A stretch of DNA of 64,000 bases from positions 930,001 to 994,000 of the forward strand of contig JBBPEB010000014.1 in the NCBI GenBank assembly GCA_039096225.1, written 5' to 3'. Of the stretch, positions 49,397 through 63,000 are shown piece by piece. How positions within the stretch are numbered: the stretch's first letter is position 1; each line of letters opens with the position of its first letter. The DNA is from Blastocystis sp. Blastoise (Eukaryota; Protista; Bigyra: Opalinata). The translations under genes were made by a program, and so were the position numbers. Under the pieces are notes generated by a model. That model worked only from the letters and a program-made list of their open reading frames with translations, made no database searches and was not told the DNA's origin.

Positions 49397-52300
49397 ATGA
49401 ATAGTTATGATATAAAAACAATATGTAGTGCGATTGATGTAAGTTTAAAAGTGAGTGAATAATAAGATAAAATAGGTATTATATGGTAATATTGGTGTAG
49501 AAATTAATAAAGCAGGTATTTATCTTGATGAATTTCAAAAATCAAAAGAAGCTTGGTCACTTTCTTTTGAATTATTACATTTAAATAAGAATTATTATGA
49601 ATTTTTTGGTTCTCAAACATTATCAACGTATATATAAGTTTATTATTATAATTAATAATTAAATAAATAATTAAATAAATAGATAAATAAATAAATAAAT
49701 AATAATATAAATAGAAAAGTTCATTTAGATTTATATTGTTTTCCAGAGAATGATTATTTAATGTTATATAATAAATTAAAAGAAGAAATTATTCGATATA
49801 ATGAAGGTATATTATATATTATATAATAATATATATAATATATATATATTAGGTTCTTTATCTACTTTAAAACAATTATGTCATGCTTTAAGTGGTCTTA
49901 TTATTCAATGGTCAAGAGATACAAAATGGTTAGATGAATTAGCAAGAATATTTTATAATAAGAATTATTCTCATATATATATATATATATTAGATGATAT
50001 AGCTCATGATATAAATACAAAGAAAGTATATATATATATAATATATAATATAATAATAATAATAATAATATAAATAGATTTCAATGGATTCAAAACATTT
50101 TGAAGAACAACGTCTTTTATTTGAACGTAATGGTGAATCTGTATATGAATCTTTATCATCATTATGTAATAATCCAGTTGTATCAAATGAAGTAAAAGTA
50201 TATATATAATAATAATAATAATAATAATAATAATAATAATAATAATAATAATAATAATAATAATAATAATAATAATAATAATAATAATAATAATAATAAT
50301 AATAATAATAATAATAATAATAATAATAATAATAATAATAATAATAATAATAATAATAATATAATAAAGGAGAATGCATATATGTGTATAATATCTTGGA
50401 TTGAATTTAAAACAATTTCTTTAAGTTCTTTAGTGAATTCAAATTTTATTCAATATGTTTTTAATGTATATAATATAATATAAATAAAAATATTTTATTT
50501 TACTTATATTAGTTAATATCTAATGAATCTTTTTTTGAAATTGGTATTTCTTCATTAGAAACAATAATAGAAATGTATATAAATATAATAATATATAATA
50601 TAATAATATATAATAATAATAATATATAATAATATATAGTTATAATGATGAGATAAATGAGAATAATTTGATAAATTTATTTAGTCCATATATAGATATT
50701 TTATATTCTTATTTTGATTCTTGTGTAATAAATGATGAATATTCAGCATGTAAATTATGTTCAATTTTATCTATTATTACTTCTGCTTATATTCGACGAA
50801 TAACATTTAATAATTCAAATATTAATCAATTAATAAGAATTCTTAATGTATATAAAAATAATAATAATAATATATAATAATAATATAGATAATGATGCGA
50901 ATATATTCAGAGAATTATTATCCTTATATTCAAGAGAGTTTATTATTTATAGAGATATTTCTTCATAATATTCAGAATAGTAAATCTTCAATTAGTATAT
51001 TACGTGATTATCCTATTTATTCAACAATAATAACAAAATGTGTAGAATCTACAATTAATAATTGTAAAATACCTTCTGTATATTATATAATAATAATAAT
51101 AATAATAATAATAATAATAAATATATAGAATTTAGATAGTTATGAATTTGAAGAGAAAGAACAATGGGAAGATTTACGACGATCTTTATTAGTAAATATA
51201 ATAATAATAATAATAATAATAATAATAATAATAATAATAATAATAATAGTAATAATAATAATAATAATATGTATAATAATAATAATAATAATAATAATAA
51301 TAATAATAATAATAATAATAATAATAATAATAATAATAATAATAATAATAATAATAATAATAATAATAATAATAATATAGATATATTATTTATAATGAAT
51401 ATTAATATTATAGAGAGTAATAATTGCATTAAGTGAAATAATAGGGAAAGATTCGTTCTTTACAAATATTTATACTATATTTGTATATAATAATAATAAT
51501 ATTATTATTATTATAAATGATAATTATAAATAATATATAGAGAAATTTTGATTATAGTGATCCTTATACTGTTGATGCTTATTTATATATATTACATCCT
51601 TTATGTTTATATTATTGTAATAATCCTCATCCACAAAAGATAGAAGTATATAATAATAATAATATATATAATAATTAAAAATAATAATAATAATATATTT
51701 ATATAGTTTTATACATATTTATTAAGAATTCCAAGTAATAAGATATATACGAATACATATTTAGATTTATGGGAATGTATATTGAAAGGTGAAATACCTG
51801 ATACATTGATATTTGAATTATATAAACAAGTATTATTTTATATGGAACAGAAAGAAGTAAGAATATAATAATATAATAATAATAATAATATATATATATA
51901 TATATATATATATATATAATAATAGTATCAAAAAGGTGCATTTAATTGTTTACGAAATATAATGATTCGAAAGAAGAAATTAACTGTTGATAATCCAGAA
52001 ATATTTAATGAATTAATATGTCGTTTATCTGGTATTCATACTGTGAATTCGTTTAGTTATAAGCGTAGTTTATATAATACATTATGTCAATATATTCGTC
52101 GTGAACCTTTAGATCGTAAAATAGTTCATTTATCGACATTATTATGTCCTATAGCTGAAGGTATAGATAATATGATAACAAATAATATTCAAGATGAAGC
52201 TCAGATGAAAGAATATATATTTTCATTACGAGTATATTTATATTTTTATTTTTATTTATATTTTTATTTTTATTTTTATTTTTATTTTTATTTTTATTTA

Positions 52301-60067: not shown

Positions 60068-63000
60068 AAATATGAATTAATATACAATAATGTGAAAAAA
60101 ATAGCAAGCAATATATATAAATGAAAGAAAGAGAAAAGAATATATATATAAATATTATTTGATTTCATTTAATAATAAAAAAATATATATATATAAAGAA
60201 ATTAAAATGAATAAAATAATATTAAGATTGTCTTAATCTTTGTCTTGCAATATCTATATAATCATAAAAATATTCACGATAATAATTATCTTCTTCTTTT
60301 ATATATTCATCTAATAACATCTAAATATATTCATTAAATAATAAATAAATAATAAAAAAATAATATATAAATAAATAAATAATAAATAAATAAATAAATA
60401 AATAAATAAATAAATAATAAATAATAAATAAATAAATAAATAATAAAATAAATAAATAAAATATATAATAAAATAAAATAAAATAAATAAAATAAAATAA
60501 ATATATACATGAATCATATTATTCATTTCATTTTCATTAAATAAATAAGAATATTCAGGTACTATTAATCTTATTGAATTTGAATAGAATTCACTATAAT
60601 ATATTTTTATCATAAACATCACACCTATTGGAATCATATATTCATTATTTCGAATAAAATTACTGGGTACATATTTAAACATACTATCAAACTATATATT
60701 ATTATTATTATTATTATTATAAATCTATATAAATCTATATACCATAGTATTAAATAATATTTTCATATTCGAATTTAAAAGTATTTGACGTGTTTCTCGA
60801 ACATTATCATTGTCATTTTCAGAAGGAGTCACAAAACTTATGAAACAATCACATGCATTACTTATAATCTCTATATTATCATTTAACATTGCTTCTAACA
60901 TATATCTTATTAATGTATCCATATAATGATTTACATTATATAATACAATAGGATTTATACTTAATAATTTTGTATTTACTTGGAAAAAAATTGAACATAA
61001 TTCAGGATCAATATGAATAAATGGATTTGAAATAGAAAATATTGAAATACATTGAGATAACATTAATAATGTATGTTCATTCAAATATAATAATACACTA
61101 TATTAATTATATAATAATAATAATAATAAATATAAATATAATAATTAATAAATATAAATATAAACATAAACATAAATATACTCTTCATTTCTATAAAATA
61201 TTTCATAAATATTACCCGATAATGCTAAGATTGTACTATAAGGTTGTTGCATAAAATCAGTCCAAATCTCTTCCATTATCTCTTTCACAAATATATATGA
61301 ATATTCACATTTTAATTCAAGTAATAAACGCATATAAGAACACCATATCTCACACATTTCTTCACTTTGTATATATTGTTGAAGAATTAATAAAATAGAT
61401 TTAGAATATTTCTTATATATTTCATATATATAAGGAATATCCATTCCTAATGTTTGAGTAAATATCTATAAATATAATAATAATAATAATAATAATAATA
61501 ATAATAATAAATATAAATAAAAAAATATATATAAATATAAATAAAAATAAAAATATAAATAAAAATATAAATATAAATAAAAATAAAAATAAAAATAAAA
61601 ATATAAATATAAATATAAATATAAATATAAATATAAATATAAATATAAATATAAATATAAATATAAATATAAATATAAATATAAATATAAATATAAATAT
61701 AAATATAAATATAAATATAAATATAAATATAAATATAAATATAAATATAAATATAAATATAAATATAAATATAAATATAAATATAAATATAAATATAAAT
61801 ATAAATATAAATATAAATATAAATATAAATATAAATATAAATATAAATATAAATATAAATATAAATATAAATATAAATATAAATATAAATAAAAATAAAA
61901 ATATAAATAAAAATATAAATATAAATAAATAAAAATAAATAAAAATATAAATAAAAATAAAAATAAAAATAAAAATATAAATAAAAATAAAAATAAAAAA
62001 AAAAATAAAAATAAAAATATAAATAAAAATAAAAATATAAATATACTCGTAATGAAAATATATATTCTTTCATCTGAGCTTCATCTTGAATATTATTTGT
62101 TATCATATTATCTATACCTTCAGCTATAGGACATAATAATGTCGATAAATGAACTATTTTACGATCTAAAGGTTCACGACGAATATATTGACATAATGTA
62201 TTATATAAACTACGCTTATAACTAAACGAATTCACAGTATGAATACCAGATAAACGACATATTAATTCATCTAATATATTATTATATATTATTATATTTA
62301 TATACTAAATATTTCTGGATTATCAACAGTTAATTTCTTCTTTCGAATCATTATATTTCGTAAACAATTAAATGCACCTTTTTGATACTATTATTATATA
62401 TATATATATATATATATATATATATATATTATTATTATTATATTATTATATTCTTACTTCTTTCTGTTCCATATAAAATAATACTTGTTTATATAATTCA
62501 AATATCAATGTATCAGGTATTTCACCTTTCAATATACATTCCCATAAATCTAAATATGTATTCGTATATATCTTATTACTTGGAATTCTTAATAAATATG
62601 TATAAAACTATATAAATATATTATTATTATTATTTTTAATTATTATATATATTATTATTATTATATACTTCTATCTTTTGTGGATGAGGATTATTACAAT
62701 AATATAAACATAAAGGATGTAATATATATAAATAAGCATCAACAGTATAAGGATCACTATAATCAAAATTTCTCTATATATTATTTATAATTATCATTTA
62801 TAATAATAATAATATTATTATTATTATATACAAATATAGTATAAATATTTGTAAAGAACGAATCTTTCCCTATTATTTCACTTAATGCAATTATTACTCT
62901 CTATAATATTAATATTCATTATAAATAATATATCTATATTATTATTATTATTATTATTATTATTATTATTATTATTATTATTATTATTATTATTATTATT

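Follow-up and report, generated by a model that had tools for sequence, protein, structure and literature searches.

Known routes to exact intron removal

The closest described systems are intron loss by gene conversion with cDNA in Neurospora (PMC4317165) and grasses (PMC4256211), RNA-templated intron deletion in human cells (PMC12065846), and false edits introduced by assembly polishing of the POLCA type (PMC7347232; bioRxiv 10.1101/2024.03.07.584013). Intron loss in Neurospora proceeds at 0.17 of the substitution rate, which is near the highest value reported (PMC4317165). In grasses, short and adjacent introns are preferentially lost, with a mild length bias (a mean of 212-266 bp for lost introns vs 360 bp for those kept; PMC4256211). 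The human-cell events use the spliced transcript as template and remove single or adjacent introns exactly; they are rare (113 of 73,030 deletions), span 85-1013 bp and were confirmed in DNA by PCR (PMC12065846). POLCA, in turn, applies a variant that has at least 2 reads and a 2:1 ratio in its favour (PMC7347232).

The locus described here shares with the Neurospora and grass cases exact removal, a tendency to lose short and sometimes adjacent introns, a 3' bias and a genomic source of reverse transcriptase. It differs from them in rate: published losses run at no more than ~0.17 of the substitution rate, whereas the loss implied here would be 300-550 times faster than substitution. Its length bias is sharper than that of grasses, with a 56-nt ceiling on the introns that differ and, in housekeeping genes, a floor near 73 nt. 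Exact removal of single or adjacent introns is likewise common to this locus and the human-cell deletions, but here the events are frequent, confined to short introns and known from the assembly alone. The resemblance to POLCA-type false edits lies in the sufficiency of two reads and a 2:1 ratio for an indel, in the use of BWA-MEM alignment, and in the false edits already described for low read depth; the difference is that the published cases concern DNA reads (PMC7347232; bioRxiv 10.1101/2024.03.07.584013).

An inverted duplication of an importin-beta-family gene

The window, by which we mean the whole stretch of 64,000 nucleotides that was analysed, belongs to an assembly of an AT-rich eukaryote (33.34 Mb in 34 contigs). 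Alignment within the assembly revealed an inverted DNA duplication of 5.9 kb, the second arm of which extends beyond the window (Table 1). The duplicated block contains upstream DNA, a tRNA-His(GTG) gene and an importin-beta-family gene, and it reaches 200 nt into the start of a neighbouring TMEM260-like gene. Because this neighbour is whole next to copy 2 and severed mid-exon next to copy 1, copy 2 is the parental one and the duplication was DNA-mediated. A processed retrocopy is ruled out, as both copies retain the introns that they have in common, the upstream DNA, the tRNA gene and part of the neighbour; a fold-back chimera is ruled out by the unique spacer.

Table 1 Features of the duplicated locus, in window coordinates.
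Feature	Position	Strand	Remark
Copy 1 of duplication	48341..54270	+	Daughter; TMEM260-like neighbour present only as a truncated 5' piece
tRNA-His(GTG)	48993..49065	+	Inside duplication; copy 2 has it too
Importin-beta-family gene, copy 1	49397..54113	+	19 introns; 915-aa product, closest to transportin-3/importin-13
46-nt GT-AG intron, copy 1 only	49807..49852	+	Third intron of gene; fused junction just beyond window end
35-nt intron, copy 2 only	62271..62305	-	Fused in copy 1 at 52007/52008
Hexamer-repeat intron, both copies	52232..52764	+	533 nt in copy 1, 581 nt in copy 2
56-nt intron, copy 1 only	52869..52924	+	Fused in copy 2 at 61362/61361
84-nt intron, both copies	53105..53188	+	Flanked by introns absent from copy 2
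52-nt intron, copy 1 only	53295..53346	+	Fused in copy 2 at 60992/60991
48-nt intron, copy 1 only	53466..53513	+	Fused in copy 2 at 60873/60872
51-nt intron, copy 2 only	60692..60742	-	Fused in copy 1 at 53643/53644
Unique spacer, 5.8 kb	54271..60064	.	Between copies; unrelated genes
Galactosyltransferase, intronless	57955-59247		Within spacer
Copy 2 of duplication	60065..64000 in window, onward to 65926 (contig 995926)	-	Parental
Importin-beta-family gene, copy 2	60222..64000 in window, start codon 64870 beyond	-	17 introns

We also considered whether the duplication itself could be false, with two haplotypes, or one locus assembled twice, carrying different consensus histories. The 99.9% identity between the copies would fit this, but a gene-bearing spacer found nowhere else separates them, their outer flanks differ, and the neighbouring gene is intact at one and cut at the other; moreover, exact GT-AG gaps would still require an RNA template. 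These features make a single collapsed locus an unlikely source of the two copies. The duplication is a genuine inverted duplication at the DNA level, and we regard a false one as very improbable.

The coding sequences of the two gene copies are identical (2,748 nt each), and the product is most like transportin-3/importin-13, judging from its predicted protein. Its length is close to theirs (915 vs 923 aa), in the PDB the second exon matches transportin-3 best, at a corresponding N-terminal position, and an Xpo1/IBN_N-like N-terminus with a HEAT-repeat C-terminus fits the importin-beta family. Families were searched exon by exon rather than with the joined spliced model, giving PF24139 at E=0.099, PF25780 at E=0.0012 and PDB transportin-3 at E=1.6, together with Atlas scores of 0.95-0.97 for the gene's exons against Xpo1/CRM1_C/TNPO3 clusters. 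All of these family matches are weak (E 0.1-1.6), a consequence of searching the exons separately, and the exportins CRM1 and exportin-T remain candidates. A search for an orthologue of this gene that could polarise the intron events found none; two candidates proved to be repeat proteins unrelated to it.

Six short introns differ between the copies

The first-pass annotation had reported five reciprocal intron differences between the copies, each GT-AG and exact to the base. Global alignment bears them out in the assembly, at the coordinates given. The accompanying claim that every event lies in the 3' half does not hold, as a sixth difference, the 46-nt intron of copy 1, sits in the 5' part. 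Combining both copies, the gene has 21 introns, 15 of which are common to both (37, 41, 47, 51, 52, 58, 61, 65, 69, 84, 87, 172, 188, 222 and 533 nt), while those that differ measure 35, 46, 48, 51, 52 and 56 nt. Differences are thus confined to short introns (6 of 12 introns of at most 58 nt vs none of 9 longer ones, P=0.019), and among short introns they are concentrated towards the 3' end (5 of 5 in the 3' part vs 1 of 8 in the 5' part, P=0.005). Because the 84-nt intron survives in copy 2 between lost ones, no fewer than five separate short events are required.

All six differing introns are removed base-exactly at their splice sites. A random gap of such lengths would read GT..AG with a probability of 0.00185, and six of six with a probability of ~4e-17, so that chance is not the explanation. 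Junction ambiguity is 0, 0, 0, 0, 1 and 4 nt, and deletion or insertion by end joining (NHEJ/MMEJ) is rejected since a direct repeat is absent at 4 of 6 junctions. As base-exact GT-AG removal is otherwise unexplained, it is near certain that spliced RNA served as a template for the missing introns. Beyond the introns, the copies differ over ~5.7 kb by 3 internal substitutions and 2 at the breakpoints, by three indels of 1-3 nt and by a 48-nt change amounting to eight hexamer-repeat units; all of these substitutions and indels are non-coding.

The same junctions bear on the converse possibility, that introns were gained in one copy by introner-like elements or by insertion at repaired breaks. 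The genome is intron-dense, its introns are simple AT repeats, and no orthologue was found that could polarise the events. However, the six introns resemble the gene's others in donor and acceptor consensus and in low GC, their lengths vary, target-site repeats are missing at 4 of the 6 junctions, and gain would leave unexplained the missing short class in housekeeping genes described below. We give gain only a very small chance of being correct.

Intron asymmetry in other young duplicates

Two further recent duplications show the asymmetry. In a triplicated segment of 7.9 kb, GT-AG introns of 35 and 39 nt differ between copies, the closest pair of which is separated by just 2 substitutions; the 39-nt intron is missing from the two copies that resemble each other most, the pattern expected from descent. 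In inverted copies of SDHA, adjacent introns of 45 and 55 nt differ, and three introns of ~170-240 nt are common to both. Across the three duplications, all 10 of the differing introns fall within 35-56 nt and none exceeds 60 nt. A tandem duplicate of 5.6 kb on contig C15, with five introns of 31-47 nt, showed no asymmetry between its copies.

Introns below 73 nt are absent from the single-copy housekeeping genes sampled

A self-trained gene model, run on ~280 kb, recovered the two gene copies correctly; it predicted 371 introns in unique genes, and 43% of these are shorter than 73 nt. In CCT, cpn60, RPS3A, MCM and proteasome genes, by comparison, none of 57 introns is below 73 nt where ~32 would be expected even among long-flanked introns, these lengths being estimates from gaps between exon-wise HMM matches (about +/-10 nt); the 73-100 nt class is partly thinned in the same genes. 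Kinase matches showed that the HMM-gap method is able to detect short introns. In HSP70-family genes that are single-copy or have only old paralogues, 13 of 13 introns, measured by hand, are at least 78 nt, so that single-copy housekeeping genes overall have 0 of 70 introns below 73 nt against 43% in neighbouring genes. We took housekeeping genes to be well expressed, an assumption about their expression. Over their domains, EF1a, EF2, RPL3, cytosolic HSP70 and BiP, taken to be the genome's most highly expressed genes, have no introns.

Among housekeeping genes, the only introns below 73 nt that we found occur in near-identical duplicates, namely SDHA (45 and 55 nt) and an HSP70-like pair on contig C33 (63 nt), which amounts to 3 of 8 introns in duplicated genes against 0 of 70 in single-copy ones (P=7e-4, a post hoc comparison). 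Among the short introns that survive in unique genes, those with two long exon flanks are rarer than expected (33 vs 43.9, P=2e-4). Within genes, short introns are shifted towards the 5' end (P=0.006), although in pooled data their share showed no trend with distance from the 3' end. Separately, a weak MCM match may hold an in-frame intron of 45 nt.

Polishing with RNA reads as the probable source

We consider it likely, with a probability of about 0.8, that the intron differences were made by RNA reads editing the assembly during polishing, and that this was assembly-wide. Both genomic copies would then most likely carry all 21 introns or more. Spliced poly(A) RNA reads would have entered a short-read polishing step, where an unspliced aligner would turn a spliced read into an exact deletion only where a short intron lies between two long exon flanks, and POLCA would apply such a deletion once its threshold of two supporting reads and 2:1 over the reference was reached. 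Nearly all spannable introns of well-expressed single-copy genes would presumably have been removed in this way with no visible trace. At duplicates, reads would be split or discounted, and an intron might be removed from one copy, both or neither, giving a reciprocal patchwork; the 3' bias would reflect poly(A) coverage.

Simulated spliced reads behaved in this manner. The simulation stood in for BWA itself with BWA-like scores; reads of 150 nt produced exact deletions only, for introns up to 61 nt, and reads of 250 nt produced exact deletions up to 87 nt and never inexact ones. Polishing with RNA reads would account for exact removal with an upper limit on length, for the dependence on flanks, and equally for the 3' bias, the housekeeping floor and the partial protection of duplicates.

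The provenance of the assembly leaves room for such an input. We infer that the window's genome is the Blastocystis Rus-B assembly of PMC12129017, which is described as 33.3 Mb in 33 scaffolds with an N50 of 1,323 kb and 23.1% GC. After Flye and racon, short-read polishing ended with POLCA, for which the kind of 'short reads' is left unspecified; the Rus-B DNA and RNA libraries, alone in that study, were run on MiSeq. On the other side, the methods name Illumina DNA for Polypolish and nowhere state that RNA reads were used for POLCA (PMC12129017). The deposited reads listed for Rus-B are RNA only (PMC12129017). The best public run contains a word share of 0.54 of the stretch, where 0.54 is expected from exons only, and it is probably RNA. 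Our literature search found no paper on genome-wide removal of introns by RNA reads in polishing.

Possible templated deletion in the cell

The alternative that shares the RNA template would be an ongoing short-tract deletion of introns in the cell, templated by RNA or cDNA. A break in an AT-repeat intron would be repaired by a retroelement reverse transcriptase, or by a repair polymerase, that copies spliced mRNA over a single junction. The process would strongly favour short introns and run far faster than point mutation. Several observations fit it: cDNA-mediated loss, too, is precise and biased towards short introns, towards the 3' end and towards expressed genes, and the removals are base-exact with direct repeats absent at 4 of 6 junctions. 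A source of reverse transcriptase is at hand in the genome's RVT_1 ORFs, of which at least 18 are intact and young and many score identically, and the intronless EF1a, EF2, RPL3, cytosolic HSP70 and BiP suggest that mRNA-mediated loss may have acted in the lineage. The pattern in the triplicated segment agrees with the copy tree, and whole-intron RNA-templated deletion is documented in human cells (PMC12065846).

The implied rate weighs on the other side. Six differences among 21 introns, set against 3-5 substitutions over 5.7 kb, imply loss at 300-550 times the substitution rate, whereas in all cases that we found intron loss is below the per-site substitution rate; this is more than 1000-fold over the highest values in print, and at such a pace the gene would be stripped of its short introns within ~0.2% divergence. 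Documented whole-intron deletions are longer (85-1013 bp) and often consecutive, but here nothing above 56 nt differs in any of three duplications, and continuous tracts taking longer introns are not seen, the 84-nt intron having been skipped. Finally, loss in the cell leaves unexplained why housekeeping genes have short introns only if recently duplicated, with long introns at their normal complement. Introns already gone from single-copy genes of the same class cannot have been shielded by a duplication that is younger than 0.1-0.6% divergence.

We therefore consider ongoing deletion in the cell unlikely. Equally doubtful is its genome-wide form, in which introns below ~70 nt would be deleted singly, hundreds of times faster than point mutation, and would have been cleared from well-expressed genes and caught mid-way in young duplicates of this tortoise Blastocystis. 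Of the first-pass interpretation, the spliced-RNA template and the 3' bias stand, and active cellular editing is less likely than an artefact; the alternative that it named, polishing with RNA-derived reads, is the better explanation of why differing introns have a length ceiling and depend on their flanks, of the housekeeping floor and of the implied rate.

Consequences for intron statistics

If the differences are an artefact, the problem extends beyond this locus: the reference assembly as published would be short of a large share of its short introns, and statistics of intron length and density, genome size and analyses of intron evolution would be biased. One conclusion of the study describing Rus-B concerns intron length in tortoise isolates (PMC12129017). 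Short-intron asymmetry in young duplicates, taken together with a length floor in housekeeping genes, offers a cheap quality check. If the losses are instead real, they would be by far the fastest known, and the organism, which can be cultured, would allow RNA-templated genome editing to be watched.

Polishing with RNA reads would further be expected to write exon bases over the ends of introns too long to span. Among ~560 introns we found ~7 credible broken splice sites, 4 of 7 carrying the opposite exon's base, and nanopore deletions fit each of them equally. One of the four is a GA donor within a conserved motif of a kinase (22591-22686), where a nanopore deletion is possible too.

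Reverse-transcriptase elements and intronless genes

Across the assembly, we detected reverse-transcriptase open reading frames of approximately 2,400–2,800 aa that have identical scores and lie in tandem at a spacing of approximately 8.5 kb. These tandem frames represent a recently active retroelement, which is possibly site-specific. A 7.9-kb segment was also found in three near-identical copies, one on each of three contigs.

In an otherwise intron-dense genome, one EF2-like gene (open frame of 857 aa), two EF1a-like genes, two RPL3 genes, and three cytosolic HSP70 genes lack introns over their domains, and the three HSP70 genes have identical scores. 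Dense runs of low-GC intronless genes on contig C16, which are unlike host genes in style, may represent integrated mobile or viral DNA.

Non-canonical splice sites

An intron of a NEK-like kinase gene in the window has the donor GA rather than GT. Splicing at this junction re-forms the conserved HRDLKP region, and no canonical alternative keeps the frame. A second, intron-like stretch of 102 nt has a good donor and lacks an AG acceptor; the frame across it is regained solely through a non-canonical splice, and the stretch is probably a residual assembly error. In the inverted SDHA pair (L033/L036), the 45-nt intron retained in one copy (C18, ~588.3 kb) ends in TG, not AG.

Neighbouring genes

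Copy 1 of the importin-beta-family duplication includes a TMEM260-like gene truncated to a 5′ piece; the intact form of this gene starts at 65728, past the window end. The spacer between copies 1 and 2 holds an intronless galactosyltransferase gene (PF01762, E=1e-21). A tRNA-Lys(CTT) gene and a tRNA-Val gene were also identified in the window; the GAC anticodon called for tRNA-Val is unusual in a eukaryote.

Coordinates of features in the window and on assembly contigs (C)
Feature	Location	Strand
tRNA-Lys(CTT)	window 9423-9496	+
Intron-like stretch	window 19084-19185	+
NEK-like kinase intron	window 22591-22686	-
tRNA-Val	window 39381-39453	-
TMEM260-like piece	window 48341-48539	-
Galactosyltransferase	window 57955-59247	+
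Reverse-transcriptase ORFs	C10:55024/63615; C13:624268/632859; C14:664277/672868/681360; C29:412516/421012	
7.9-kb segment	C21:1049068-1056960; C16:944089-951939; C15:775038-782950	
EF2-like, EF1a-like, RPL3, cytosolic HSP70	C8:298521, C25:890354, C8:1731802, C3:1632298, C2:230369, C25:695280, C16:1451521, C16:1552281	
Low-GC gene runs	C16:917283-927072 and 952315-967068
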